Assembly: GCA_965644495.1 (NCBI GenBank)
Contig: CBFFSA010000002.1
Coordinates: 558,001 to 622,000 of the forward strand
DNA length: 64,000 bases
Reading direction: 5' to 3'
Source: Perkinsela sp. CCAP 1560/9
Taxonomy: Eukaryota > Protista > Euglenozoa: Kinetoplastea
Of this stretch, positions 78-58,714 are shown in pieces; the first letter of the stretch is position 1, and every line of letters starts with the position of its first letter. Both the position numbers and the translations under genes were made by a program. The notes under the pieces were generated by a model. That model had not been told where the DNA came from and ran no database searches. It saw only the letters and a program-made list of their open reading frames with translations.

Positions 78-800
78 GTGACTCCTTCGAAAGACCTTGG
101 GCACGCCTTTACCCCCACACAATTCCGAACTTTGGCCCGTTGGTGGTTAGGCGTGGACATCTACCATGAAGATAGCACGTGCCCCATGCCGAAATGCTCG
201 CTCCCCCTTGACAGCAAAGGGGACCATGCACTGTCTTGCAAACATGGCCATGGTATTGTGACCAGGCACAACGCTGTTACGGACCAGTTCACGGACGTGT
301 GCAGTCGATCCCGCCTCGCCCCTCAACGAGAAAAGAGTCTCGGGAACAGGGGCCCAGGTGGGGCCCTCACTAGACCTGGCGACATATACTTGCCCAGCCT
401 TTTTCTTGGAAATCCCATTGTGCTTGACTTCGCGGTCACCCATGCTCAGCAATTAAAATATACGGACAAAGTCCGAAACGCTAGCTGGGTTGCCGCGGGG
501 TCATTTGCCGAACATTATTCCTCAATGGAGAAGGGCAAGCAGCGTCGAGAAGCCGTAGAAGCAGGATGCGACTTTACGGCCATGGTGGTCGAAAGTTATG
601 GCGCCTGGAGCCCCAGCGCTTCAGCCGTGCTCCGAAAAGTCGGTGAGAGGTGTTCGCACGCCTCGGGGGGTCTACTTTCGGAAGGTGAGGCAACGAGCCG
701 AATCTTCGCTGAACTAAACATAACCCTTATGCGCTTTCAAGCGCGCATGATGGTTGCTCGTTCACCTTCCGAAGACCCCATCGCAACTCTGGAGGAATAG
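78..800 (+). CDS. C-terminal CCHC + restriction-like endonuclease (RLE) domain of the retrotransposon polyprotein (5' end outside the window)
   Basis: Clearly paralogous to the C-termini of ORFs 6071-8431 and 11830-12432. Confidence 0.88.
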   Translation: MTPSKDLGHAFTPTQFRTLARWWLGVDIYHEDSTCPMPKCSLPLDSKGDHALSCKHGHGIVTRHNAVTDQFTDVCSRSRLAPQREKSLGNRGPGGALTRPGDIYLPSLFLGNPIVLDFAVTHAQQLKYTDKVRNASWVAAGSFAEHYSSMEKGKQRREAVEAGCDFTAMVVESYGAWSPSASAVLRKVGERCSHASGGLLSEGEATSRIFAELNITLMRFQARMMVARSPSEDPIATLEE

Positions 801-821: not shown

Positions 822-923
822 GATCGAGCCGACAGTGCCTATCCTCACGCCTCGCTTTCACGAGCAAGGTACCCCAATGTGAGACAGGTATGGATTCGGA
901 ATGTTCATCCGAATCCGGCGATC
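822..923 (+). ncRNA. Conserved structured 3'-UTR RNA motif 1 (other copies at 2915-3013, 12387-12477, 12513-12617)
   Basis: Stems CTCAC/GTGAG vs CTCGC/GCGAG and GCCTCGC/GTGAGGT vs GCCTAGCCC/GGGCTAGGT covary; conserved YCCCAR linker and AC(A/G)G junction. Confidence 0.7.
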
Positions 924-932
924 AAAACCCAA

Positions 933-1041
933 CTTCGTGACCGTGCCGCTGTCGGCACATGCCCGCGCCTGCGCCTTCCCGTATAACAAGGGAAGGGTTC
1001 CCAAGCCAGGCCGTGGAGAGGTCGAGAGACCCGGTCCGAAG
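933..1041 (+). ncRNA. Conserved structured 3'-UTR RNA motif 2, multi-way junction (second copy 12622-12732)
   Basis: GTGCCG/CGGCAC vs GTGTCG/CGACAC; GGTC-GAGA-GACC vs GGTC-GAAA-GACC (GNRA loops); closing stem CTTCG/CGAAG vs GTTTCG/CGGAAC. Confidence 0.7.
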
Positions 1042-1319
1042 CGCGCACTGCTGGAAGAAGGAGTGGAGCACGCGCGGATTGATTTCTGGGGGGAAGTGAG
1101 GGAAAGCGGAGGGCAAAGTTTGGAAGGCGCGGATGGATGCTCGGGGGGGGGGAAGTGAGGGAAAGAAGCGGGTGAAGTCGGGAAGTCGCGGATGGTTTCT
1201 TTGGGGGGGGGGGGGAGAAGGGAGAGAAGCGGGCGAAGTTGATAAGGGCGAAGTAAAGTAAGTAGGAAAGTAAGTAAGAAAGTGATACCGTACATTTATA
1301 GAAAGTTAAAAAAAAAAAT

Positions 1320-1355
1320 CTTTAACGATAAAGATACAGTTTCTGTACCTTGTTG
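1320..1355 (+). other. Spliced-leader (mini-exon)-like sequence, copy 1
   Basis: CTTTAACGATAAAGATACAGTTTCTGTACCTTGTTG; contains the kinetoplastid/diplonemid SL core ACAGTTTCTGTAC and ends in TTG. Confidence 0.88.
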
Positions 1356-2066
1356 AATTATTTCTCCTTTTCTTTCCTACAACATCTTCTGGACCATGGG
1401 AGGGCACCCCCCTCAAATTCTCACTCTGTTGCCGGCAACCCTCCTCCCTCTCTCATCCCATCATCCCCTCGCGTCATGTCTCCCCACCTCTTCCTCCCGC
1501 CTCTGCGCGCTCGTTGTTCTTCTGTCTTTCTCTCTTGCGTCCCCCACCCCCGTGCCAGCAGCCCAAAGTATTGTATACTTGCTCACGGGGTGGGGGCAGA
1601 GTTCCAGACGGATGGGCTGCGGCGTCGTTTTCCCTCGTCTCCGCGTCCGTCCCGCCATGTCCCTCTTCCCGCTTTTTGCCCTTGGCGCGACGGCGTCTTT
1701 GCGCTTCGTTACCTCCACGTCTCCCACCCTCGTACAGCAACTCAAAGTATCTGATACTGCTAACGGGGTGGGAGCGGAGGTCACCTCCACATCTCCCACC
1801 CTCGTACAGCAACACAAAGTATCTTATACTGCTAACGGGGTGGGAGCGGAGGCTCTGGACCACATGGGCGCTCGCGCGGACGAGTCGGTATAGGGTAGGG
1901 GGTAAGGACGGGGATGGATGAGAGGGTTAAGGGAAAGTGTGGAAAGTGGGGAGTAAGTACGGTGAAGTGGGGAGAGTAAGTACGGTGAAGTGTGAAAAGT
2001 GTGCGAAAGTGTTCGAAAAGTAGATAAAAACGTTAAACTCAATACTATCCCCCCCCCAAAAAAAAA
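1320..2066 (+). mobile_element. Non-autonomous SL-headed unit 1 (no RT; three repeated long hairpins; purine-rich tail, C9-A9 end)
   Basis: SL head; repeats near 1541, 1720 and 1792 (CCCACCC(C/T)CGT..AGCA..GTAT-nnn-ATAC..TGCT..ACGGGGTGGG); ORF 1396-1893 has no recognisable domain. Confidence 0.7.
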
Positions 2067-2887: not shown

Positions 2888-3108
2888 AGGCACCTGGGAA
2901 AGTCCTCGGGGGTTGATCGTGCTGACGGGGCTAATTCTCGCGCCTCGCTTTTACGAGTGAGGTTCCCAGTGCGAGGTAAGTGGGTTTCGAAGTTGTTTCC
3001 GGACCCGGCGATCTGCACCTTGCTTAGTGATCTTCTTGCGCGAATGACTTGGAGGTCGTGGGGAAGTGGAAAAGGAGAGGGGGTAGGGGAAAAAGTTAAG
3101 CGGAAAAC

Positions 3109-3414: not shown

Positions 3415-3472
3415 CTTTAACGATAAAGATACAAAAAAAAAACGATAAAGATACAGTTTCTGTACCTTGTTG
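3415..3472 (+). other. Spliced-leader-like copy 3, interrupted by A10 flanked by a 12-bp duplication
   Basis: CTTTAA-CGATAAAGATAC-A10-CGATAAAGATAC-AGTTTCTGTACCTTGTTG. Confidence 0.88.
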
Positions 3473-8431: not shown

Positions 8432-8535
8432 GGACGCGTAAAGTGTGGAAGTAAGTTGTTGTTGTTGTTGTTGTTGCTAGTAAGGACGCGTAAAAAAAAA
8501 GTATAATTAATATAGCTATTATAAAAAAAAAAAAA

Positions 8536-8571
8536 CTTTAACGATAAAGATACAGTTTCTGTACCTTGTTG
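8536..8571 (+). other. Spliced-leader-like sequence, copy 4
   Basis: Identical 36-mer directly after A13. Confidence 0.88.
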
Positions 8572-8607: not shown

Positions 8608-11600
8608 ATGAGGGAGGCTGATTCATGCGGCTCGATGACGATACCAGAAGATGACCTTTTTGCCCAAGAGGAGAAAACACACACGCCAGGCTCCTGGGAC
8701 CAATTTGAGGGTAATCAGCATCTTATCGCTGCAACTAGTACATATGATGAATCCCTCTACACGACGCCAATATTACACCGGCCTGGCAAGACAAAATGGA
8801 AACGGCACTACATTCTTTGCACCGAGAGCAGACACCTGACACGGGGATGATTTTATCGGCAGACGAAGAGAGAAATCATTCCAGCGTATCAAGGGACTGT
8901 GCCCCCAATACGTCTGGCAAAGGTCAAGAAGTAACAAGCCAAACCCCAGAGCGGTACGAACCACATTCCATGGCCACAGCGAGGCTTCTCCTACGAAAAA
9001 GCCCTCTTTCTAGCCAAAAGTCGACGCCCAAAATTTTCGAGAGAGGGGTTAGTAAAGATTCCAAGACTCGCCAACCAGCTAGACGAGACACAATGAGACG
9101 TCGCACCTGTCCAGTCGAAGTGTGCAACTGGAGCACCGCAGCACACGGAGGGAAGTGGCAGGCCTACTACCATCACGTCGCAAGCCAACATAGCGATACT
9201 GTGCCTTCGGAATGGTGGGAAAAAGAAGGACGTTTCTTATGCCCCTCATGCGGCAAGCACTATGATCACAATAAAAAAGCTTCCCATGAGGAAAAATGTC
9301 AAGACTCCTTTAGCTCTTACACCTCGTCGCTAACCTGTGAGCCAGAAACCGAAGAGGCTTCCATTTCCCAAATTTACAAGGATTCGCTCCCGTCTCTTGA
9401 TTATGTCTGCTCTTACGCCATCAACACATGCAAAGATGTACCATTCCGATGCAGACAACAGTGGGCCTCCGTTTTGACCCAAACAATGGCTGCAGTGGTT
9501 AGAGAGAACTCGGTTGAGGCCTGGACACGCTTAGCGATGCTCCCAAAATGTGTCCTGCCCGCGCCCAAAAGAGGGGGACGAAAAGGAAATTCGTCCTATA
9601 CCACGAAAACGAGCCAACGCATGGATCGCTGGGAATCCAGGGAATACGCGGCACTGTGGAACGAATCTGTTGCGCAAATGGTAAAGAAGCGGGAGAGGAA
9701 CGACGATGAGGAAGTGGACGAGTCCGGCAAGGCGGCGAAACGAGCCGAGTTGCTGGCCAGACAAGGGGAGTTTTCCCGTGCGATGGCAGCTCTTACAGCA
9801 GCACCGATGGCACCTGAATCCGAAGAAACTTACGAAAAACTCCAATCGAAGCACCCAGGTAGATTGCCTTTATCATCTTCAGTCACATTCCGTCCATAGA
9901 AGGAGAGCCTTTACATCTATCCGAAGGCGAAGTTGAAAAGGCACTACGCAGTTTCCGGCGCGGAACATCGGCTGGCACCATGGGCCTCCGCCCTGAGCAT
10001 CTCCAGAGCGCCTTAGCAGCACACCCTGACGACAAGGTACAGCCGCTTTTCTATCTCAAGGAAGTCATGAACCTCTTGCTGTCCGGGAAAGGTTGTCTCC
10101 AAGTCCAGAAGTTCTTCGGCGGCGCCAGACTATGTGCCTTAGAAAAGGGAGAAAATGATGTCCGTCCTATTGCTGCCGGCGAAACAATAAGGCGACTTGT
10201 GAGCAAAGCGGCCTGCTCCGCAGTAAAGGAAAAGGCAAGCAAACTACTCTGGCCTCATCAATACGGAGTCGCAACACCTGCAGGGGCCGAACGCCTGATC
10301 CACCTGTGTAGGCACGTGATGGCCTCTCAGGCGGGAAGTTCTGATTTCACGCTATGTAAAGTGGATCTGCGAAATGCCTTTAACAACATCTCAAGAACTG
10401 CCTTTGCTGCACTTATGAGGGAGCACTTCCCGGAGCTCTCCCAGTGGGTTGAATGGTGTTACACCACCGAGAGTATTCTCACTTACGGTTTCCGTCAGAT
10501 TTCTTCAAAGGAGGGTGTGCAACAAGGGGATCCGTTGGGTCCTTTACTTTTTTCCCTCGTCATGCAACTGGTTACTACCGAGATAGATCGACAACTTCCT
10601 GGTCTTCTTAAGCTTAATCTGTGGTATTTGGATGACGGCATTCTCGGGGGGAAGGCTCACGACGTCAGACGAGCTTTAGACATCATCGAACGAGTCGGCC
10701 CACAGTGGGGCATCTTCCTAAACGCCAGCAAGTGCGAGGCGATTACACATCCTGAATCCGCCGAACACTTGGACAGCTTCGACAACATCCCGACGACTAA
10801 AAAGACAAGCGAGGGAAATTTTTCAATTTTATGTAGCCCTGTAGGAACGACTGATTTCTGCACAGAATTTCTCCGTGAACACACCCTGTTGCCTGCTGAA
10901 GAATCCCTAGCCGCGATCGAATACATGGAAGACCCGCAAGTTTCCCTCGCACTCATCCGACAATGTGCTGGTTTCAGCCAAATGGCATATTCTCTTAGAA
11001 CCACACCCACCAATTCCGTCCATGAGCTATGCGAAGAACTTGACACAGCAATACTGCATACCACGGAACGCTCTATATGTCCTTTAAATGAAGACGCTGC
11101 CGCACAAGTACAACGTCCAAAATCTTATGGTGGATTCGGGCTGCGCTCTTCAGCGATGCATGCCTCATCGGCGTACGTTTCCTCAGTCTCTTTCGCAGCG
11201 GATAAGGACAACTGGAACTCCCTCGACGCAAAAGATTTTGCTGATGCAATACTGGACGTCAATTCACGAGCGGGCACCAGCGTCCTGGAAGAGAAAACCG
11301 GTCTAATTTCCCCTCAGCACGCTTCCTCTCTCTCTCACCTCAAAAAAGTACTGGGTCTCCGTGGATCAAAACGACCTCTCCCGGCGAATCTTTCCGTAGC
11401 ACCACCCGGAGACACGACGACCACTTACTTTGAACAAACGAAACTCGACCACGAATTTTCATCTTCCAACGACCGAGTCGCACGCCAAAAGGTGCTCAGC
11501 CGTGCAATTTCTTCCCGCGAGTACACCGATGCATATCAGAAAGCTGATCCTCAAACGAGGGCACGTTGGATATCTCAATCTGGAAAAGGGGCAGGTGACT

Positions 11601-12432
11601 GGCTGTTTGTCACGCCCTCCAGGGAAAAGGGGCACGCCTTTACTAAAACGGAGTTTCGCACCCTGTGCACCTGGTGGCTAGGACAAAAAGTATATCCAGA
11701 AACACACCCCTGTCCCGTCTCAGGATGCACGCTTCCGATGGGACCACAAGGAGACCACGCATTGGTCTGTAAACACGACTACGGGATCTCGGCGAGGCAT
11801 AATGCCTTGGCCCTCCAGTTCTTTGACGTTTGTCAAAAGGCCAATTTGTCTCCGAAAAGGGAGCACAGCCTCGGCAACAGAGGTCCAGGGGGGCACTCAC
11901 AAGACCAGGGGATGTGTTCCTTCCGAGCTACACGCTCGGTAAAGGCCTTGTCTTTGATTTTGCGGTGACCCACGTCCAGCAACAGAAATATACGGACCTG
12001 GTCCGTTCTGCTGGCATGGTAGCTGCAGGGGCCTTCGCAGAGAAATATGCGACGAACCACAAGCGTGGACAAAGGCAAGAGGCTCTAGAGGCCGGACATG
12101 ATTTCACCGCCATGGTAGTGGAATCGTACGGATCATGGAGTCCGACGTCCCTCCATATGCTGAAGAAGATCGCGGGAAAAAGAGCCGCAGCATGTAAGGG
12201 TGATATGTCCGAGCAAACGTCAATGTTTTTTCTTCTCCAGGACATGAACGTTACGCTCATGCGGTCTCAGGCACGAATGCTTGTAAGACGCATGGCAGAC
12301 GTGGATATCCATGCCAGTCTCGCTTTACTGCACGAGGCACCCTCTGACACCACACCGAATCGTGCCAGCTGCGGACCGGCAGGAGCGATCGAGCCTACAG
12401 TGCCTATTCTCACGCCTCGCCTTCGAGAGTGA
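8608..12432 (+). pseudogene. Unit 4 polyprotein (LsmAD-like, zinc fingers, RT, CCHC, RLE), frameshifts near 8770, 9900 and 11890
   Basis: ORFs 8566-8850, 8796-9899, 9980-11968 and 11830-12432; WDQFEGN..STYDESLYTT at the N-terminus. Confidence 0.85.
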
Positions 12433-12957
12433 GGTACCCCAATGTGAGATAGGTAGGGATTCGGACTGACAGTCCTATTTCAGCACGAAGACACCATGGT
12501 ATCCAGGACGGGTGCTGGTCGGGTCGACAGAGTCTATACTCACGCCTAGCCCGCGAGGGCTAGGTACCCCAAGTGAGGTAGCACACGGGTAGTGAATCTC
12601 CTCCCCGTCGGCCAGCATCCTGTTTCGTGACCGTGTCGCTGTCGACACAGGCCCGCGCCTGCGCCCTCCCATATAACAAGGGAAGGGTTCACAAGTCAGG
12701 CCGTGGAGAGGTCGAAAGACCCGGTCCGGAACGCGCGAATGGATTGGGCATGGATTGCTTGTTTTAATTTTTACTGTTTTTCTTGTTTGTAGTATATACT
12801 TAGGGGAGACTAAATTGCTAGTTTTGGGCTGAGAAAAAAGGTACATCTGTGGAAAGAAAAAGAATTGCTAATTTGATTGCTTGTTTTCAACTCGTATCCC
12901 CCCCCCCAAAAAAAAAAGATCAACCTTTTTGTAAGCAAAAAAAAAAAAGAAACATCA

Positions 12958-13807: not shown

Positions 13808-16798
13808 ATGGTTTGCTTGTTGTTGCTTGTTGTTTATTTTCCCCTACTTTTACGACCCTTCATGACCTCGCCACATGCCAGAAGTGGGGAAATCTCACAG
13901 GCGTTGCAGGACTCTCATAAGAGACTAGGCAACGTAACTAGCCGATCCGCCACCTCTCTGACAGGTGCTGAACGCGAGGCCAAGGAACATGCAGCTCAAC
14001 ATGCAAACTCCTACCGAGTCAGCTCCAAAGCTCCTATGAGAGGTTCACTGAAAACAAACACTGAAAAGAAGGAAACCGCAATAAATACGACCCGGCGATG
14101 TAAACATACTTGTAAGGAGAAAACAAAATGCGGCCATCCCTGCTGCAAGACTGCGCCGAATCCGCCGTCCACTCAGCCCCTTAACATTTCACAATGCAAG
14201 CATCCCTGCAAAGACAAGAGTCTGTGCGGCCACCCATGTTGTAAACGACATCTTCTTCCTACCTGTGTTCCCGAAGATAGTACCACACATGTATCCCAAG
14301 GGAATACTGTTACCGATGTAACGAGGAGGACGGAAACAAACACAATGTCCTCTGAAGCCCCACCATCTGAAGGAGTAAAGGATGTACCTGAACCTATCGC
14401 CCCGTGCAAACATATCTGCAAGGATAAGGCGAATTGCGGGCACCCCTGTTGTAAACGTCACCTCCACACCACTTGTACGAGCGCCGGTAGTGCACCTAGA
14501 CTAGATCCACAAAGCAGTACGCGCGACAATGGGAGTCAAAATCTGGCAGGAGACTCTGGGGGCTTTATGGTGAAAGTACTGCGCCACTTGACCAAGCCCA
14601 TATTTCAATGTGCGGGCAAACCCCAAACTGCGCAGAACTCCTCGAACACGGAAGTGTTTTCACCCAGCGGCAGATCCACAAGCGAGGGCTCCAACCACTA
14701 CGAACGCTCAAGGAAACACGTCGAGGGAGAAATGTCGGCGAAGAGAAAATTGATTGCCCCAGGAATCGCAAGATCAAACAGCGACAACCCTGCTACAACG
14801 CATGCCAACAGAGCTGATCAGCGTGAAGCAAGTAAGGTGCCCACCTTTCGGAAATCCCCTTCTTCTCCTCCGGAAGGAAAACAACATACTATCTCCTCAA
14901 CAGCTATCAATCTTGCGTATGAATTATGTAAAGGCCTCCTTGGCATCCCTCCCCCGGAAGCACGAGCGAAACCACCGCCTCTCAGAAAGATGACTCCCAA
15001 GACCGTAAACCGAGGGTCCCAACTATCTCCCAAGCGAGAATCTCCCGAATTCGCTATAGAAAAGCTGCAGGAAGGACCGATATTGCGCCTCAGCGCTCGA
15101 CAGCCCGAACCAGAGCCTCAGAACCCATACAATCTACCATGTAAACATCCCTGTAAGGACAAAACCACGTGTGGCCACCTTTGCTGCAAAAGAGGGCTTA
15201 CCCCTGGCATCACAACATCGTCACCCGCACGTATCTCTTCCTCTGATACCGAAAAGCACCCCCCAGACCGGATAACTGATGAACCATATCGCGACCATCC
15301 CAGCAGCACGCCCGAGCACGACGCAGGGGTGGACACTTCCGACAACTCCAAAGCAGAGAAAGTCCCGTACCTCCCTGCCCCTTTATCGCCGCCACAGAAT
15401 CTTTCGATAGTGCCGGAGTCCTGGAACGTCTCGTTCACGCCTAGTCCCACACGCCGCGGCGTAGAGAAACTACTTATTAATCGTATAAAGTCACCCCACC
15501 ATACCGACGACTCAGAAGGACTCTTGACAGAACCACCGTTCCCTCTCTGCACTGCGGACGACGAAGTTCCGGAATGGGTATTCGAGAAGGTCCCTCACGA
15601 CGTGCCTTCTGGGAATTCGGGGGTCCCTGTAGAAAGACGTCGCTCGACAGAGAAAGGGAAACAATGCCTACATTTTATACAATCCCGATCAAAGCCTCTG
15701 AAACTTCGCCTAGCAAGTGCCCAAGAATGGTTATATTTTCCGGACGTACGAGCTGCCTGCGAAAGTCAAATCACACGCAGCAGGATTAGCTCCCTGCAGG
15801 GAGCGCAGGCAGCCATTTCGAAGGCGCTGAACTCTGGCAACCCCACGCACGACATCATAGTAAGAGGATGTTCCGTAGAAGAACTGATGGACCATGGGGC
15901 GTGCGATTTCATTACAATTCACAAAGTCGGAAGCCCGGACAAGTCTTCGCGCCACTCCAGTTGGGTATCTCTGTACCAGGATGCAGCCCTAAAACTTTCA
16001 GATTACTATTCCTCTCCGGGTACTCTCAGTAAAGCCGTTCTTAAGAGACTAAACGGCTCCGAAATTCCCGGGCTTGCAGATTATGTGATAACCCTACATC
16101 GACACACACCCATCGACGAAACTCCGCCGGTCTTAGAAGCTATTCCGGAGCTTCCAGCATATCGCATAGCAGACCCACCCAGTCGTGTACCCTCTTTGCA
16201 ATCCTTTGCACAACCCTGCCGCCACACCTGCCGCGACAAACTCGGGTGTGCTCATCGTTGCTGTAAAGTCTTCGGTCCCGCTGCTCCTCCAACTGCAGGT
16301 TCCACTGCCGCCGAGACCAGCTCTGCCCAGGAATCCAAAGTACCTCGCTCGGCGGTTCCACCAGACCTGCAGGAGTATAAAGAACAGGATCTCGATTACC
16401 TACTCCGAACAGCCAGGTACATCCAAGGGGGAAAGATATGTATCAACTTAACGGACGCACAGTGGCACGACGTTGAGACCAAGGCTCTCAAAAGGTGTAG
16501 TGCATTACTCACTCCTGAACAAGACATAGATTCCGCCGTTAGGAACGCCGAACTCCTGAGCTCCATACTATCTGTCTCTACCTACGAGGTTGCTCGCGAC
16601 GTGAATCCCACGAAAGGCTTTTTAATCCGCACAAAGAAAGGTCACGCAAAGACCCGATGCAGACCCTTGGAAAGCGAAAAAATAGCCTCGTCCTTCTCCC
16701 GGCACCTAAAAGAACTGCAGACAAAACTACGCTATACACATGGAAAGGCAGACAGGAACGCCTTAAAACGAACGATCAAGGAAACCAAAAAAAGGTGA
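13808..16798 (+). CDS. Long N-terminal ORF with five CxHxCK(D/E)KxxCGHxCCK motifs
   Basis: Motifs start at 14099, 14195, 14405, 15140 and 16217; probably joined to the RT ORF before lesions at 16790-16940. Confidence 0.8.
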   Translation: MVCLLLLVVYFPLLLRPFMTSPHARSGEISQALQDSHKRLGNVTSRSATSLTGAEREAKEHAAQHANSYRVSSKAPMRGSLKTNTEKKETAINTTRRCKHTCKEKTKCGHPCCKTAPNPPSTQPLNISQCKHPCKDKSLCGHPCCKRHLLPTCVPEDSTTHVSQGNTVTDVTRRTETNTMSSEAPPSEGVKDVPEPIAPCKHICKDKANCGHPCCKRHLHTTCTSAGSAPRLDPQSSTRDNGSQNLAGDSGGFMVKVLRHLTKPIFQCAGKPQTAQNSSNTEVFSPSGRSTSEGSNHYERSRKHVEGEMSAKRKLIAPGIARSNSDNPATTHANRADQREASKVPTFRKSPSSPPEGKQHTISSTAINLAYELCKGLLGIPPPEARAKPPPLRKMTPKTVNRGSQLSPKRESPEFAIEKLQEGPILRLSARQPEPEPQNPYNLPCKHPCKDKTTCGHLCCKRGLTPGITTSSPARISSSDTEKHPPDRITDEPYRDHPSSTPEHDAGVDTSDNSKAEKVPYLPAPLSPPQNLSIVPESWNVSFTPSPTRRGVEKLLINRIKSPHHTDDSEGLLTEPPFPLCTADDEVPEWVFEKVPHDVPSGNSGVPVERRRSTEKGKQCLHFIQSRSKPLKLRLASAQEWLYFPDVRAACESQITRSRISSLQGAQAAISKALNSGNPTHDIIVRGCSVEELMDHGACDFITIHKVGSPDKSSRHSSWVSLYQDAALKLSDYYSSPGTLSKAVLKRLNGSEIPGLADYVITLHRHTPIDETPPVLEAIPELPAYRIADPPSRVPSLQSFAQPCRHTCRDKLGCAHRCCKVFGPAAPPTAGSTAAETSSAQESKVPRSAVPPDLQEYKEQDLDYLLRTARYIQGGKICINLTDAQWHDVETKALKRCSALLTPEQDIDSAVRNAELLSSILSVSTYEVARDVNPTKGFLIRTKKGHAKTRCRPLESEKIASSFSRHLKELQTKLRYTHGKADRNALKRTIKETKKR

Positions 16799-16964
16799 AA
16801 GGGTTTATCATGCGGAGGCCACCGCACAGCGGCAAACACTCGAACAACGCCGGGCACTGAAACGCTTTAACAGAAACCCATGGACCGCCGCTAGCGAAAC
16901 ATTGGACAAACCTCGGTCTTGAAACATCGGTCTTGAAGCCCCAGCCTCCTATCCTACATGCGAT

Positions 16965-19355
16965 GTGCACAGCGTGGAAAAGCACTTTGGTGATACACTT
17001 TCTGCTCCTTCAGAGGAATACCACATTCCTCCGTCTGACTCGCTTGGGACCCGTCCTCTTGTCGACATGTCATGGGAAGAGCTGACCCCGACCGAAATAT
17101 CCGACGCTCTAATCTCGAAAAGGAATGGCAGTGCCCCAGGTCAAGACACCATCACATATACCATCCTAAAACGGTGTCACAGCGTACACTCACACATCGC
17201 TACAGTCTTCAACGCGTTGCTCAAGTATCGCACTTGCCCACCTTCCTGGAAATGCTCTGTTACCCGCCTAATTCATAAAAATGGAGCTCACGATCAACCC
17301 CAAAACTGGCGCCCCATCAGTCTCATCAGTGTTCTAGCTAAGCTTCTCCATTCGATCATAAGTCGCAAAATAAACCGCCATCTGGTCGAGGCAGCAGTAA
17401 TTGATCCATCAATCCGAAAGGGTTTCCTACCGGCCATCAACGGGACACTGGAACACACTCAGACGCTGGATGCAATCTTGCAGCACTACAGAAAGAACAA
17501 GCTCCAATACTGCTTAGCCCAACTGGACCTATCCAACGCATTCGGTTCAGTCCCACACAATGTTATATTTGAGGCGATGCAATGGGCCAAGATCTCCCCG
17601 ACTCTCCTCGGGTACATCAGTAGTTTATATAACGGAGCGTCTACGCAAATAAAGTGTTATGAAGGTCTCTCCTCTACAATTCCTGTGCAACGTGGGGTAC
17701 TCCAAGGCGACACCCTCTCCCCGTCTATATTCCTTATCGTCATGGAAGTAGTACTGCGTTATATGACACTTAACTTTCCCGCGTACGGACTCGATCTGCC
17801 AGGCAATGCGAAATGCTTTATAAAGGCCTACGCTGACGATCTCACTGTCCTCACCAGCAACCCGAAGGAGTCACAAATCGCACTTGGAGCCCTATCCTCA
17901 ATCCTCCGCAAAATAGGTTTATCTATAAACGTGAAAAAGAGTAGGGTACAATGCATGGCCGTGCGACCGGACGATGAACACCCAGGTTACATGACACGCC
18001 GTCCACAAATTCTGGTCAATCACATTCCCATTCCCCAAATCTGTGATGCAGGTAGCACCTTTCTGGGCATGATCATCGCCCCTGGAGCACAACAGTCCCG
18101 TGCGCTGTTCATGAAGCTACGTCCTCTCATTAATTCATGGCTCAGAAATATCGATAAGAGCGCCCACGACCTCCCTTCGCGACTATGGATATATCAGCAT
18201 GCCATTATCTCCCGCTTGCGCTTCTCGCTTACGATCCACCCGTGCATCACTATGAACTTTGTCCTCCGACTCCAGAAACTCTGTACCAACTTCCTGCGGC
18301 GTTGGATTAACGTGGCGCGTGGCTCTAGTCCCGAAGCAATTTACTCATCGCGCGGCTGGGGACTGAGGAGCCTGTCGCAACTGTGGCATGAATGTACTGC
18401 AGACCTTATGTGCCAGTTAAAGAAATCCAAAGATCCGGCTGCCGCAGCTGTGCTTCGGAACAAAATACGGGAAGAAGAGGAGAGACGCTTGAAAGGACAA
18501 ATACGGCCCGCAACTCACATAACGCACTGCTTGAACGACCGATCTCGCGCCAGGAAAACTCTCATTGACCTGAACGAGGAGCGTATGATTAACGCTCTGC
18601 GACGCCGCACCACGGTTGCCATACAGTGGTGGGACACGAACACGGAGGAAGATCAGGCGAAAGATTTTGCAGCTGCCATTAACGGCCTTAGGAGCACTTC
18701 ACTGAGCAGATTCGCTACACATGTGATGGTCCAAGCCCCACTTCCTACCCGGACCATGCTCAGAACATGGGGGAAGAATGGTGCAAATAGTGTGTCTTGC
18801 CGTATCTGCAACTCAGCACCCGAAACCTTAAGGCACCTGCTCTCAGGTTGCAGGACATCCTTAGACCAAGGACGCTACACGTATCGACATGACAGAGTGT
18901 TGAGCGTCCTTGCGAACGCGATCGTCGGCTCCCCCAACACCTCCTGGGCCTCATTCGACCTCGAGGGCCTCCGTAACCTCCCAAGTTGGTGGGCAGACCT
19001 AGAAACCACTCGGCGTCCAGATGGCCTGGTCAGGCTTCACGATGGAACTGAATTTATCGTTGAACTGACCGTACCCTGGGAAGACAACATCGCGGAGGCA
19101 CACTGCCGCAAAACGGAAAAATATCAGAATATATTGCATCGCCGCAGGATGGATCACCCGAACACACATCTGCTGTGTATGGAGGTGGGTGTAAGAGGAT
19201 TGCCGGCTTCCTCTCTTCGGCAGGTAGCCCGCCTTTTTGGGAGTGACAAAGGGCTGTCCACGGAATGCCAACTTGAAGCCATACGCGAAGCAATTCGTAG
19301 TAGCTTTGTTATTTGGCTAAACCGGGAATCACCCGACTGGAAAGGGGGCGGCTAG
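16965..19355 (+). CDS. Reverse transcriptase + CCHC + RLE endonuclease
   Basis: Motifs as listed for the element; reading frame open for 796 aa. Confidence 0.92.
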   Translation: MHSVEKHFGDTLSAPSEEYHIPPSDSLGTRPLVDMSWEELTPTEISDALISKRNGSAPGQDTITYTILKRCHSVHSHIATVFNALLKYRTCPPSWKCSVTRLIHKNGAHDQPQNWRPISLISVLAKLLHSIISRKINRHLVEAAVIDPSIRKGFLPAINGTLEHTQTLDAILQHYRKNKLQYCLAQLDLSNAFGSVPHNVIFEAMQWAKISPTLLGYISSLYNGASTQIKCYEGLSSTIPVQRGVLQGDTLSPSIFLIVMEVVLRYMTLNFPAYGLDLPGNAKCFIKAYADDLTVLTSNPKESQIALGALSSILRKIGLSINVKKSRVQCMAVRPDDEHPGYMTRRPQILVNHIPIPQICDAGSTFLGMIIAPGAQQSRALFMKLRPLINSWLRNIDKSAHDLPSRLWIYQHAIISRLRFSLTIHPCITMNFVLRLQKLCTNFLRRWINVARGSSPEAIYSSRGWGLRSLSQLWHECTADLMCQLKKSKDPAAAAVLRNKIREEEERRLKGQIRPATHITHCLNDRSRARKTLIDLNEERMINALRRRTTVAIQWWDTNTEEDQAKDFAAAINGLRSTSLSRFATHVMVQAPLPTRTMLRTWGKNGANSVSCRICNSAPETLRHLLSGCRTSLDQGRYTYRHDRVLSVLANAIVGSPNTSWASFDLEGLRNLPSWWADLETTRRPDGLVRLHDGTEFIVELTVPWEDNIAEAHCRKTEKYQNILHRRRMDHPNTHLLCMEVGVRGLPASSLRQVARLFGSDKGLSTECQLEAIREAIRSSFVIWLNRESPDWKGGG

Positions 19356-21282: not shown

Positions 21283-22182
21283 GTGACTGAACCGGCGAAC
21301 GAGCTGGTATACAAACAAAAAAGTCCGCACCCAACTCTTGACGAGCTTGCCATTGTTTCTATAGCACCCTCTACCCTCTCGTTATACACTAACCGCATCG
21401 AAATTATAAAACAGCACTGTAGAAAGACTGGTCACCTTTTTATTACTATGGAAGCCTTCGGGGGGTTTCTCAACCACCTGGCAGTAACAAGTAAATCTAG
21501 CTCAACAATCCAAGGATACCACAGTGCACTCCTTTTCTTTCAAGAAGTACACAGATTGGACTTGGGAAAAGAGGAACAGCCATGGGCAAAAGACCCTATT
21601 GTCATGCGTGCGGTTGAAGGTGCAAAATGTCTAAGTAAAAGGAAGTCCACCGATATCCAGCCTAGGGGGTACGTAACCGAGAGCATGTTAACTCAACTTG
21701 TAGCATGGTTCGCTGTTCGACGTGACGGCCTTCAACTCGCTGATGCATTGAAGGTACAATATTATGCTGCACTGAGATCTTGTGAAGTTGAATTATTACG
21801 TGGAGGTGATTTATGTGGGGAAGGTAATAGGATGTATTTGGTTGTAAGGTGTGATAAAACACAGAAGTTTAGCACGGACCGTCTTAGGAACAAACCATTA
21901 CACCCCTACGCGATCAGCATTATTCAACCAATTATGAATACTGTTCCCCATGGTTATTTAGCCTTTCCGGCTTACAAAAAGCGAAACGTTAGTAAATGTT
22001 TGAAGCAAGCAGCAAAAGAACTTGCTTGGCCACCCGGTGTGCGCTTTGATGGCACACATACTTTGCGTCACGGGGGGACGGAGGTGGTAGTAAATGAAGC
22101 ATTGGATGTAATGATGGATGCCTTGTCGGGAATGAGTAGCCGAGTAAGGGAAAGACATTATATGCGGCCGCGAAATCAATAA
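21283..22182 (+). CDS. Tyrosine recombinase
   Basis: ALRSCEV (R), DKT (K), HTLRHGG (HxxR), RERHY (Y); N-terminal APSTLSLY..STIQGYHSAL. Confidence 0.9.
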   Translation: MTEPANELVYKQKSPHPTLDELAIVSIAPSTLSLYTNRIEIIKQHCRKTGHLFITMEAFGGFLNHLAVTSKSSSTIQGYHSALLFFQEVHRLDLGKEEQPWAKDPIVMRAVEGAKCLSKRKSTDIQPRGYVTESMLTQLVAWFAVRRDGLQLADALKVQYYAALRSCEVELLRGGDLCGEGNRMYLVVRCDKTQKFSTDRLRNKPLHPYAISIIQPIMNTVPHGYLAFPAYKKRNVSKCLKQAAKELAWPPGVRFDGTHTLRHGGTEVVVNEALDVMMDALSGMSSRVRERHYMRPRNQ

Positions 22183-22331
22183 AATGTTTGTGATACTAAT
22201 ATAATTAGTAGGATAATAAAGGGTAATACCAGGGGATGGAAGTAAATGGTATTAAATGATGTCATTATTCCGTATTTTGCCTAGACTGTTAGCTGGAAGC
22301 GCAACAGTAAGAGTTTTACCCATGTTTTAGG

Positions 22332-24110
22332 GTGCGCGCAAGGCAAATCTGGTACCACATTGTATTCAACAAACACTTTACTTCTGTTTTTAGCTATATT
22401 ATTGTAATGGAAGAACCTTTGCACGAACTCCCATACGAAGTGTTTCAGGCGAGCTCTGCTAAAATAGAGAAACATAGAGTGGGTATGCGACCACTAGACA
22501 AGATAAATGTAGCCGCCAAATTAAACTTAAAAGCTCTTAGTACCATCTCATTGGTGCAAGAGCATGGGTGGGCTCATCTTTGCGTTGCTTCTCTACTAAA
22601 CGCTAAATCTTTTCTCTCAATGATTAAGTTAGACCCCTTAGGGGATAGCTGTGGGGACCAATCACACGAACAGTGGATGCCCCATCTTCAAGAGCTACGT
22701 GAAGCGGATGTTCTTGACCACGTAAGGATTCCGCACAAGGTTCCACGGGTTTTCTTAAGATATTTTGAAGTAGAGAAAACAAAGTCATTAAGTAGGAGTA
22801 TTGTTGATGGCACACCTCTTAACCAGTTGTGCGAAAAGCCTCATCCTATAAATCTTCCTTCAATAGAAGAAATTATTTATGCACTATCATGGTTTCCTTC
22901 AGGAATTGTGGTAACGGGTGACATTCGCCACTGGTTCCATCACATTCCGTTACCGGATGGAATAAGGAATATTTTCTCCATCAAGTGTGCAAAGCAAGTC
23001 TTTGAGCTAAAAGTTTTACCCATGGGGTTTTCATGGGCGCCATATATAGCACAATGTCTGGGGTGGATCATTGTCCTGAATGCTCTTCCCATCGGTTATA
23101 CTTATGTTTTAGTAAGGGAACAAATTAATGTTCCTCCATCATACATTTGGATAGCAAGAAAACGTGATCAGCAACGCTGTGGTGTAGTTTTCTTGTGGGT
23201 TGATAATATACTAACAATATCAAATAATCGTTGTGTTGCGGAAGAAATATACAACAAGCTTCGAAGAGCAGCAAAGAGTGCCCCACTCGGCTTTAGCATT
23301 AACTGGAAGTTCTTAACGTCCCCCACCACAACGGGTTCATTTCTAGGATTTGACTTTCGATGGTGTGAACAGTCGCTTCTTTGGAAGCACTCTCTTGAGA
23401 ACATCAAAAAATGGTCTTTGTTACAGCCATTGACGTGCCAGACTGTACAAGAAGTCCAACACATAATAGGGGTCATTATGTGGGACACTCTGGTAAGAAA
23501 TGCACCTTTCGCATCGGTCTACGACATTCATACGCTGGGAAGGGCTGTCTTTAACAAACAAACGCGCGATAAACACGGTCTTTCCAAGGACCAACTAGTC
23601 CTTTTACTTAATGCGTTTATACAGGTACTACAGAATTGTGAAAACTCCCGTGTATGCCCCAAAGCTATCAATGATTATGTGATTGCCTTTTCAGATGCCT
23701 CACTATCGCACTTGGGTTATTGCATATGCTCCCGGGAAGGGCGCATTTTGGTGGAAAAAACTATTCCTGCCAGAGAATGTGCTGACATCTACAAATTAGA
23801 ATTTCAAGCTGCCTCTTTAGCCCTAACGAGCGCGTGGACACTTGCTGAGCATGTCCTCCTCGGCTGTGATAATACAGACACAGTTCATGCTCTTATGAGA
23901 CGGACTTCCAGCAGAGAAGATATTTGTCAGCAACTTTTAGTTCTGGAGGACGCGTGTACCTCAAGCCAACTCACGAAACAAGTCTTTTATATCCCGTCCC
24001 AATGCAACCCTGCCGATGGATTAACTAGAAGCGAACACGGATTTTGCGTCAAGATGGACATTTTAAGTTCTGCCATCGAATACGCAAAGCGTCATCTACC
24101 GATGGGTTAA
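22332..24110 (+). CDS. DIRS-type reverse transcriptase + RNase H
   Basis: GDIRHWFHHIPL, LPMGFSWAPYIAQ, WVDN, FLG; RH FSDAS, LE, GCDN, NPADGLTR. Confidence 0.92.
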   Translation: MRARQIWYHIVFNKHFTSVFSYIIVMEEPLHELPYEVFQASSAKIEKHRVGMRPLDKINVAAKLNLKALSTISLVQEHGWAHLCVASLLNAKSFLSMIKLDPLGDSCGDQSHEQWMPHLQELREADVLDHVRIPHKVPRVFLRYFEVEKTKSLSRSIVDGTPLNQLCEKPHPINLPSIEEIIYALSWFPSGIVVTGDIRHWFHHIPLPDGIRNIFSIKCAKQVFELKVLPMGFSWAPYIAQCLGWIIVLNALPIGYTYVLVREQINVPPSYIWIARKRDQQRCGVVFLWVDNILTISNNRCVAEEIYNKLRRAAKSAPLGFSINWKFLTSPTTTGSFLGFDFRWCEQSLLWKHSLENIKKWSLLQPLTCQTVQEVQHIIGVIMWDTLVRNAPFASVYDIHTLGRAVFNKQTRDKHGLSKDQLVLLLNAFIQVLQNCENSRVCPKAINDYVIAFSDASLSHLGYCICSREGRILVEKTIPARECADIYKLEFQAASLALTSAWTLAEHVLLGCDNTDTVHALMRRTSSREDICQQLLVLEDACTSSQLTKQVFYIPSQCNPADGLTRSEHGFCVKMDILSSAIEYAKRHLPMG

Positions 24111-56232: not shown

Positions 56233-56668
56233 GAAGAAGAAGAGAAGAAGAAGACACGGAGGGATCTGCAGCGCCAACCGTTAGGGTAGAGTCTCAAGTC
56301 ACTGACCTTCATTGTCTTGCTACCCCCTTCCCGGACGGCACTCGACGCCTTGCGGCCCGAGAACGGCTACCCAACCGTAGCTCCCAGGACGGGCGTCCAA
56401 CCCCGTTGCATCGTGTAGGCTGTGTCTCAAGCCTCCTTTGCGTAAGCAGCTCGCAATTTAGCGGGTGCGCTGGAGCCTGGTTCAGCCCGGCGGTTCCGGG
56501 TCGGTCCTCCAGGGGAGCAGGGTTTGGTTGGGCCTTGAAGGCACTCCTGATCGCTCTCCCTTTGTAGTGAGGCAGCCAGGTTGCGAGTTTTGTCGATAGC
56601 GGGAATCGAACCCACAACCTGCAGGTTATAAGGCCCATCGTCTACCAACTACGCCCGCACCGCTCCTG
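56233..56668 (-). mobile_element. tRNA-derived SINE with (TTC)n tail and GAGCTCTTCA target duplication
   Basis: Minus-strand head TAGTTGGTAG..CTTATAA..GTGGGTTCGATTCCCGC; removing it restores the YR frame YSRALQ-AQGALEP. Confidence 0.75.
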
Positions 56669-57198
56669 GAGCTCTTCAAGCCCAAGGCCTCCTAGAGCTC
56701 TTCAAGCCCAAGGCGCACTGGAGCCACAAAGGCAGATGCTGCCCGTCACGCCTTATTTACTAAAGAAGCTAGCTTGTCGAGTTACAGCGTCGGAATGGAT
56801 GGCGATACTAATTTGTTGGAAGGCGGCAGCCAGGTGGACAGAGGTTACGCAGCTAACAAGAGTGAACTTCGTGCTGATACATCCGGAAGAAATTGTCATT
56901 TATCGGGGAAGGACGACGAAAAGCACGCGACTCAACCCATATCGACCGTTTGATTTTTGATTTTTTTAGGCATTATATCTCCGAGGAGATGTTACCTCCC
57001 TAGAACAAGCCCCCCCTTATCGCTTGCTAGGAGCTGTGCCACGCAGCACGCAAGTCAAATCCGAAGATTTCACCAGATCGAGCGCGAGCAGCCAGCTTAT
57101 CTTTTTTTTTAACCCCTTTCATATACTACAAGATCTTCTTTATGAAAAAAACACTTCTTTTGAAGTGAAAAAACACAACACACTCCAAAGATTATGCT

Positions 57199-57396
57199 GA
57201 ATGACACCCACCCTAGTTCCTTAGTACCTTGTTATATCCGGTACCGGGCGGTGTCATTCTCACGCTGCGATGTCTGGGTGACCGTTACCCTAGTTATTTT
57301 GTGCCTTGTTTTGCTGGCACCGGGTAGTGTCATCCGCGGGGCCTTGATCGTACCCACCCTAGGTATGTAGCGTCTTGTTGTGCGACGCCGGGTGAG
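57199..57396. ncRNA. Three tandem covarying stem-loop modules
   Basis: ACCC-TAG-N7-stem-TTGTT-N4-6-stem-C-GGG with stems GTACC/GGTAC, GTGCC/GGCAC, GCGTC/GACGC. Confidence 0.65.
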
Positions 57397-58714
57397 TTAG
57401 CTAGGGAAGCTGGGGTCGCTACGCCCCATCATTCGACAAAAGTCGAATGCTCTGACTGAATATATCATGTCGACCGTACCTATACGCAATCATCACCGGC
57501 GAGGGTACACAAGAATTGGCAAGCTACCTGATCAATCTACCCCAACGTCAACCAGTATGCCGAACGAATGTGCGACAGATGGATCTTCACATGCGAAACA
57601 TACTGGGAAATGGCACCGGTTACGGCACTCTTTCCATCAAAAGGGGGGCAGTCACGTAATTATTGAATGGCACCTGGGGTGCAGCGATGCCCCATTGTTA
57701 TTGTTATTGTTAATAAAACCGTTTGGCCAACGAGGGCTATGGTTTCCCCAGATTAGAGCTGAGGTGCCTCTCGGCGCTCAACCCGCCCGAGAGCAGATCA
57801 TCGCAGCAAGGGTTGTCAGTCGTGCGCCTAAGCTAGGGAGGTGGGGTGCGCTATACCCCTGCGCCTTAGGTAATGCAAATAACGCGCCCCTTGACCAAAA
57901 AAACCACTCTATCTTTTGAGGGTGGACATTCTGCATGTGACGTCTACGTGGATGGCATCCGCTTTGTGGGCACGGATGCTGAGGCGAATAAATTCGCTAG
58001 CTTTGTGGATACCCGATGCCGGGTCGTCGGAGGGGCTTTCAAGGATGTGGGGAAAACTCCGCTGAAGCAATACGTCTTCAACGGCGTGCGTTATGATCAC
58101 GGGATGCATCGGGTAGCTTTGGGTCCGAAGGTAGTGTCGAAGCTCGTAACCGATCAATTTCATCACCCGACTTTTATAGACTTTTATTTGGAGGCGACGG
58201 TGGGGCGTCTCATATAGAAATTCACGCCTCGTTCATTGATAAATATAACCGAAGTAACAAACGAAATCAAAGAATATTGTTGAAATATAACCTGAGCTAA
58301 TTATCAGATCAAAACGTACCTTTATGATATATAGTATATAGCACTCCTTGTAGATATTTCAAAGGCCTTATTATAGAAACGAAACTAATCAACATCTCCT
58401 ACAATATACTTTGTGATCGGGGAACCCATCCCCGACCCGCGGCCAACCACCCGCTCACTCGTCACACATCACCCGTACACCAGTCACCTAATCCGTCGCT
58501 CACCACAGAAAACCTCCTTTTGAACCAAATCGGTCCCACATCCTGAGGGAGCCGGCCTCAGTATGCGAAACCTATTCACTTCAAACATATTCGCGTCTTC
58601 CTTTCCTATGCTCTGCTTCTTCTTTAGTTTTTTTTTTTTGGTTTCTAAATATAACACACAAGACGTAATGACTCGTTTTTGTACTCCAAGCACACAAATC
58701 AATCTTCCCTATTA

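Follow-up and report, generated by a model that had tools for sequence, protein, structure and literature searches.

The CRE clade of trypanosomatid retrotransposons (SLACS, CZAR, and CRE1/2) is characterised by a single ORF in which a reverse transcriptase (RT) is combined with a C-terminal restriction-like endonuclease (RLE), together with zinc fingers, a poly(A) tail, and an association with the spliced leader (SL); its members insert site-specifically into SL RNA genes, with duplication of the target (PMC12278014). In a limited search of the literature we found no account of how CRE-like elements choose their RNA template, nor of any RNA fold located in their 3' UTRs. R2 proteins choose theirs through 3'-UTR stems or a pseudoknot (PMC12180492; 10.1101/2023.04.07.536001). 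In Perkinsela, TG acceptors are reported to be as frequent as AG and the genome to be littered with SL fragments, some of which are tied to retrotransposons (PMC5601477).

The retrotransposons described here come from a 64-kb stretch of Perkinsela DNA, analysed as a whole and hereafter called the window. They resemble the CRE clade in having a single ORF with an RT and a C-terminal RLE, zinc fingers, a poly(A) tail, and an association with the SL, being CRE-like by domain order, and differ from it in that their copies are not located in SL genes, 5'-truncated copies lie directly behind poly(A), and SL heads are found only on full-length units. An earlier note on this DNA had described a folded RNA element in several of these units, here called motif 1. 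Motif 1 is not a free-standing unit, only half of an element. By comparison of its copies, it is the 5' domain of an RNA made of two duplicated domains (~220 nt in all), which lies within the 3' UTR of SL-headed CRE-like RT-RLE retrotransposons, and motif 2, located downstream, is its paralogue (Table 1).

Host units and their spliced-leader heads

In the first 12.9 kb of the window, units are piled up head to tail, every one with a poly(A) at its end, and those units that start inside the window are headed by a copy of a kinetoplastid-type SL. An RT and/or a C-terminal RLE is encoded by units 1, 4, and 5, and genome-wide there are 448 candidate endonuclease matches. The RT-less unit 2 has a second full copy in the genome (99% identical). 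Two further elements adjoin the pile (window 13808-19355 and 21283-24110, + strand), a second RLE-type element having a long ORF1 along with zf-RVT, and a DIRS/VIPER/TATE-like element in which a recombinase is combined with an RT; the motif is absent from both. The genome is rich in chimeric chains of units, and motif-less families are chained too. Many ORFs begin with an LsmAD-like (ataxin-2/Pbp1) stretch, a weak Pfam match (window 8608-8793 (+); loci L031, L036, L037, L041-L043, and L045), and a distant relative of these ORFs at locus L053 has an MLLE domain. A link between the LsmAD-like N-terminus and the presence of the motif was looked for and none was found.

Table 1. Position of the units, domains, and helices within the window.
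Feature	Position	Strand	Remarks
Unit 1 ORF, C-terminal zinc-knuckle/RLE part	78..800	+	Open frame of 1341 aa, starts before the window; RLE motifs from translation
SL copy heading next unit	1319..1355	+	Directly behind the poly(A) of the previous unit; others end at 2103, 3472, 8571
Unit 2 orphan ORF, 247 aa	2144..2887	+	No RT/RLE similarity, no Pfam match
Unit 5 RT-RLE coding region, in pieces	8796..12432	+	
Domain 1, type A (copy 1)	822..923	+	From sequence, folding, and covariation
Copy 1 P1	822-826/919-923	+	
Long-range (pseudoknot) 8-bp helix, 5' strand	828..835	+	
Copy 1 P2a	836-842/884-890	+	1-nt bulge at 843
Copy 1 P2b	844-848/879-883	+	
Copy 1 P3	849-857/862-870	+	Invariant G.U pair opens the helix
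Copy 1 3'-side bulge	871-878	+	Ends AA(N)
Copy 1 P4	892-900/908-916	+	
Domain 2 (motif 2), type A	934..1040	+	Same C-G / G.U / bulged-AA core as domain 1
Long-range helix, 3' strand	949..956	+	Alternatively loop and 3' arm of local hairpin 943-958
Domain 1, type C (copy 2)	2915..3013	+	Solitary, no domain 2; 3' UTR of RT-less SL-headed unit 2
Domain 1, type A' (copy 3)	12387..12475	+	Junction reduced to two-way stem; overlaps unit 5 stop codon; without partner strand
Domain 1, type B (copy 4)	12510..12620	+	Core from 12517; 12-bp P1; long-range strand 12523-12530
Domain 2, type B	12624..12731	+	Long-range partner strand 12639-12646

The SL copy is the head of the putative element RNA and not the target site, because copies truncated at the 5' end lie immediately behind poly(A) and SL copies precede the element 5' UTRs; for the same reasons (46 truncated copies directly behind poly(A), element 5' UTRs after the SL) we dropped the idea of target duplications in SL genes. 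The SL heads (window 1319-1355, 2068-2103, 3436-3472, and 8534-8571; L031-L050) differ between copies immediately upstream of AACG, which looks as though the RT stumbled on modified cap nucleotides. Partial SL duplications in some heads start after AG or TG, consistent with re-splicing at acceptors of the Perkinsela type.

Several other repeated features were seen in and around these units. An SL-headed non-coding unit (window 1538-1854 (+)) has three long hairpins with a 5'-side bulge, (A/G)CNCAA, that is the mirror image of the motif 1 bulge. A unit of ~436 nt with subterminal inverted repeats (L038:8656-9092 (-); L036; L044) is found in tandem dimers and also inserted precisely into RT ORFs, with many junctions at one position. 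Rfam gave no match to it, and it may be Helentron-like or an RNA that processes itself. A tRNA-like stretch, for which ARAGORN gave no call, heads a further repeated element (window 56590-56660 (-); L002). Whether or not the motif is present, a short word of the form TTGCTNGTT or TTGCTAATT recurs in the 3' UTRs of many families, e.g., at window 12750-12890, and is a possible processing or protein-binding signal.

A covarying arm and a second domain

All four copies of motif 1 listed in the earlier note were found where it had placed them, and the substitutions it had described (CTCAC/GTGAG to CTCGC/GCGAG and others) are present in the sequence. A covariance model built from the four copies, as the note had proposed, matches only these within the window, the score falling from 80 bits to 15 bits below them, and at least 150 places in the genome (21 Mb, 110 contigs). 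Alignments were drawn from ~410 kb of DNA, comprising the source genome and three contigs of a second assembly with near-identical elements, in which the distinct motif types A, A', B, B', C, D1, and D2 were recognised. Across 16 distinct copies, the arm formed by P2a, P2b, and P3 is paired in 93% of cells, as compared to only 31-46% in slid controls, and 8 of 20 pairs show two-sided changes, as compared to 3.7 in shuffles (a value reached by 0 of 500). RNAalifold recovered the same arm without prompting. The proposal that the fold is kept while the sequence drifts was thus borne out for its inner part, which covaries beyond the shuffled controls. One-sided changes are mostly to G.U, so that the sense strand is the folded one, also in agreement with that note. 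At the 5' edge of P1 conservation drops upstream of the edge (15 upstream contexts), and variation in the 5' strand of P1 is mostly pair-preserving. The copies are related, and kinship alone makes 4.9% of the variable column pairs in the two-domain alignment appear covarying; the case for structure therefore rests on whole helices and not on single pairs. Motif 1 is supported as a selected RNA structure common to autonomous and RT-less units, and unit 2 indeed carries copy 2 in its 3' UTR.

Two other features of the original description needed correction. Of the linker reported as a conserved YCCCAR, all that stays constant is the terminal AA (AG in copy 2), along with the C-G and G.U pairs on either side; the middle varies in both domains. 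This variation, with no change in any partner, led us to reject a pseudoknot through the bulge, and likewise the use of the bulge as a template (a telomerase-like word). The distance from the stop codon, described as at or just after it, varies: copies 1 and 2 lie 21 and 27 nt beyond the stop, copy 3 overlaps it (12430-12432), copy 4 follows ~80 nt downstream, and a non-coding family (family D, see below) has no ORF.

Motifs 1 and 2 share a core made up of a C-G pair, a GCC paired with a GGU that opens with G.U, and, on the 3' side, a bulge of 5-8 nt whose last two nucleotides are AA. Applied to 412 kb, a descriptor of this core, composed after inspecting both domains, matches copies of the two motifs and nothing else (shuffles give 0.002 matches per strand-kb), and a model made from motif 1 only matches motif 2 from end to end, weakly (10-17 bits). 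The comparison shows each domain to be, in its predicted fold, a multiway junction with a bent arm, i.e., a helix, a 3'-side bulge ending in AA, and a helix opened by G.U.

A long-range helix connects the two domains. What had been taken for an unpaired AC(A/G)G junction and a separate GC(C/T)G closing stem belongs to one 8-nt strand that pairs with motif 2 wherever motif 2 is present. Over six strand combinations, 47 of 48 pairs are kept, and the cognate partner strand is the best, or tied for best, by pair count in every type. Considered with P1, the helix is 100% paired in 14 aligned cassettes, with five pairs changed on both sides (0 of 500 shuffles); considered alone, its 8 bp are complete in 14 of 14 sequences, with three two-sided changes, and no longer helix is complete in all of them. 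A local hairpin of domain 2 that shares a strand with the long-range helix, and hence competes with it, is kept as well, with compensatory changes of its own, the long-range duplex being predicted to be the stronger in all 14 sequences. Two mutually exclusive pairings apparently under selection suggest a switch or a folding intermediate. Copies 2 and 3, where no partner strand is present, use local stems instead, and this is the fold that the first reading had described.

Such a switch might work by RNA-RNA kissing, the 4-nt loop of the domain-2 hairpin nucleating on domain 1 and extending to 8 bp, either within one RNA or between two. Besides the compensatory changes in both exclusive pairings and the greater predicted strength of the long-range duplex, in four of the five strand types the domain-1 strand opens with 6 self-complementary nt, and chimeric chains abound in the genome. 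However, cis and trans pairing are indistinguishable from sequence and an intramolecular partner exists, the strand of type A is no palindrome, a partner strand is missing in copies 2 and 3, and motif-less families form chains too. We regard the kissing switch as doubtful, and equally so its extension to pairs of RNAs, which would make it a dimer-initiation-like signal in a non-LTR retrotransposon. If true, two templates could be co-loaded on one RT, leading to serial template jumps, exchange of 3' UTRs, and capture of non-coding passengers.

Another kind of pairing would link the 3' UTR with an SL, either the head of the same RNA or that of another RNA bearing an SL. Most variants have their best perfect match to the SL in the last 12 nt of the leader, copy 1 could form 10 bp including G.U (p about 0.01-0.02), and the P3 loop of domain 2 could pair with the final 8 nt of the SL over 7-8 bp, with wobble-tolerant changes; a third hairpin family reaches 11 bp, and domain 2 of the SL-less family D does not have this loop. 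Against it, the complementary stretch of motif 1 is buried in P3, copies 2, 3, and 4 pair no better than with a shuffled SL (p 0.3-0.9), and the test, made post hoc, relied on variants that are not independent of one another, so that we consider SL pairing hardly credible. The third family just mentioned consists of three tandem bulged hairpins (window 57195-57405 (-), also L038, L040, L047, L048, L078, and L079) with the loop word AACAAG, as in motif 2, and it is its last unit that has 11 bp with the 3' end of the SL (p about 0.003-0.007 vs. shuffled SL).

The earlier note had named an existing Rfam family as an outcome that would count against it; in the comparison with Rfam 15 there were no matches in the window at gathering score, and at E values up to 10 the motif copies and family D gave only unrelated chance matches. 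Pattern scans returned 22 matches in viral contigs and 19 in metagenome contigs, in both cases about the chance estimate. None of the viral matches was found by the covariance model, and the metagenome contigs gave only partial model matches of at most 16 bits, without the fold. No motif was seen at the 3' ends of four RT-RLE genes that come from other samples and are related at 41-44% identity, two of them on contigs that run out shortly behind the stop. One related RT-RLE element from a metagenome (L052:3395-3694) has a 3' UTR with hairpins of its own and a word like a tRNA T-arm, which is not the motif. The fold is real and uncatalogued, and is known from one species.

An exchangeable cassette and its possible role

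The two-domain cassette does not follow the phylogeny of its hosts. Type B (~190 nt) has 96% identity between families whose adjacent coding ends are 57% alike in protein and 61% in DNA (174 pairs), and is scattered over the endonuclease (RLE) tree among motif-less families. A near-identical cassette on divergent ORFs, dispersed in this way, indicates that it has been exchanged recently between families. Intact SL-headed ORFs exist both with the cassette (1196, 1266, 1288, and 1338 aa) and without it (1187, 1329, and 1360 aa), from which it follows that the cassette is not required; among the intact ORFs compared we found no protein feature tracking its presence. No copy was detected outside retroelements in the 412 kb scanned. 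The cassette is placed 200-450 nt from the poly(A), and in family D near the 5' end. This last family, which is non-coding and lacks an SL head, has the two domains ~57 nt downstream of a 5' end that is fixed: the copies found (48/48) start there, right behind poly(A) like CRE insertions, with 84-100% identity among them. Since family D carries the cassette and has no ORF, the element needs neither a stop codon nor an ORF. Its copies (e.g., L004:2296-2944 (-) and L038:8656-9764 (-)) often stop at a fixed position, behind which stands part of another element that is truncated at its 5' end.

The simplest explanation for structural selection, retention by passengers devoid of coding capacity, and spread between families is a raised chance of the RNA being copied. 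The best reading, to which we give about an even chance, is an optional and swappable RNP-docking element working like the R2 3'-UTR structures. The fixed bulge and the wobble face would offer a docking surface for a protein, most likely the element's own ORF protein, possibly by means of a host RNA-binding protein, and the contact face would be the invariant wobble and the bulged adenines. Docking would keep the RNA in the retrotransposition particle, and RNAs with the cassette would be copied more often. A signal both generic and optional could spread between families by RT template switching, and RT-less and non-coding passengers would steal it. Of the functions suggested earlier, a cis-element for RT recognition is still the best guess insofar as it means an element aiding RNA copying, but strict RT specificity is weakened by the presence of the same cassette on very different RTs and by intact families that do not have it. 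It also counts against docking that the cassette does not co-evolve with one RT, unlike the clade-specific 3' UTRs of R2, as do its distance of 200-450 nt from the poly(A), its placement near the 5' end in family D, and the failure of any protein feature to track it.

The generic and optional pattern would be matched almost as well by a stability or localisation element, in which a cellular RNA-binding protein binds the fold and prolongs the life of the RNA or holds it where it is copied. A swappable cassette suits a host ligand, non-coding family D keeps it, and other, unrelated passengers have tandem bulged hairpins exposing CAA. The absence of any copy outside retroelements in the 412 kb scanned speaks against a host factor, which we judge fairly unlikely.

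The two remaining functions that had been put forward, an unclassified ribozyme and a nuclease-resistant fold, gained no support from the mapping of 5'-truncation junctions. The 46 junctions mapped genome-wide are spread over ~130 nt with no dominant site, i.e., neither a cleavage hot spot nor a pile-up at the 5' edge of P1, and the largest class (five copies) is found at a poly(A) microhomology. A hot spot at the P2 bulge, suggested by three copies, disappeared in the genome-wide map.

A self-cleaving ribozyme made of two docking domains is suggested by the invariant G.U, the bulged adenines, and the interdomain docking, which recall catalytic RNA cores in general. HDV-like ribozymes are nested double pseudoknots with P1.1 and with P4 placed between the 3' strand of P1 and J4/2, twister has a UAA cleavage strand in L1, an L4 closed by P4, and the two pseudoknots T1 and T2, and hammerheads have three stems around their core. 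The likeness to the first two is limited to short superficial words (GCC...GGU, CCCAA) and to occurrence in retroelements, their helices and core residues being absent here. An alternative register gives an HDV-like P1-/P2-like pair, without a P1.1 GG or a P4, and what would be L3 is a hairpin that covaries; the stretch resembling CCCAA forms a bulge and not a P4-closed loop, and varies without partner change; the hammerhead core (CUGANGA and GAAA) is missing from all aligned copies. With these defining features missing and no Rfam match, the lack of fit to HDV, twister, and hammerhead consensus noticed earlier was upheld. Ribozymes are common in retroelements (L1Tc/ingi Pr77; PMC12278014). 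Nevertheless, no Rfam ribozyme matched at E up to 10, the position is within the 3' UTR and not at a unit boundary, the junctions have no dominant site, and full-length elements with an intact ORF and the motif still multiply, which efficient cleavage between ORF and tail would prevent. All this makes a ribozyme quite improbable.

Flaviviral exonuclease-resistant RNAs (xrRNAs) come in pairs, as tandem junction folds with a pseudoknot at the start of the 3' UTR. Here, too, tandem junction folds with a pseudoknot open a 3' UTR, and an xrRNA-like fold would give stable 3' fragments. However, retrocopies starting at the 5' edge of P1 do not pile up (DNA copies serving only as a proxy for the ends of RNAs), family D has its fixed 5' end ~57 nt upstream of the fold, there is no local pseudoknot, the bulge middle varying without partner change, and no Rfam xrRNA matched. 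We assign this reading a very small probability.

The docking element that we favour would be directly testable, since natural compensatory variants, single-domain versions, and motif-less families are all available for what is a compact and well-bounded candidate.

Comparison with retroviral signals and R2

Retroviral dimer-initiation and packaging signals contain a self-complementary hexamer, kissing extended by strand exchange, and tandem stem-loops. The cassette resembles them in a hexamer that is self-complementary in four of the five strand types and in the tandem stem-loops within a retroelement RNA, and would do so in kissing extended by strand exchange; it differs in that the strand is located in a junction and not in an apical loop, has an intramolecular partner, and belongs to a non-LTR host, dimerisation being hypothetical here.

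The 3'-UTR elements of R2 (stems in Bombyx, pseudoknot-hinge-stem in birds and turtles) are likewise structured, partly pseudoknotted RNAs in the 3' UTR of an RT-RLE non-LTR element, apart from the priming end. A conserved structure at this position and its retention by non-autonomous partners (unit 2 and family D) are common to both systems. Specificity to a cognate protein clade, and presence along with it, is where they part, with 96% identical cassettes on 57% identical proteins and intact families without any, and on these grounds we do not class the element as R2-type. The fold is also another one, a tandem duplication with an interdomain helix, which is optional and has been swapped between RTs ~57% identical. 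A-clade R2 proteins reject a D-clade 3' UTR, whereas the cassette, as judged from sequence, rides on divergent RTs. A 3'-UTR module portable among many divergent RTs would, if true, be unlike the cognate pairing of R2 and of interest for RNA-templated insertion tools.
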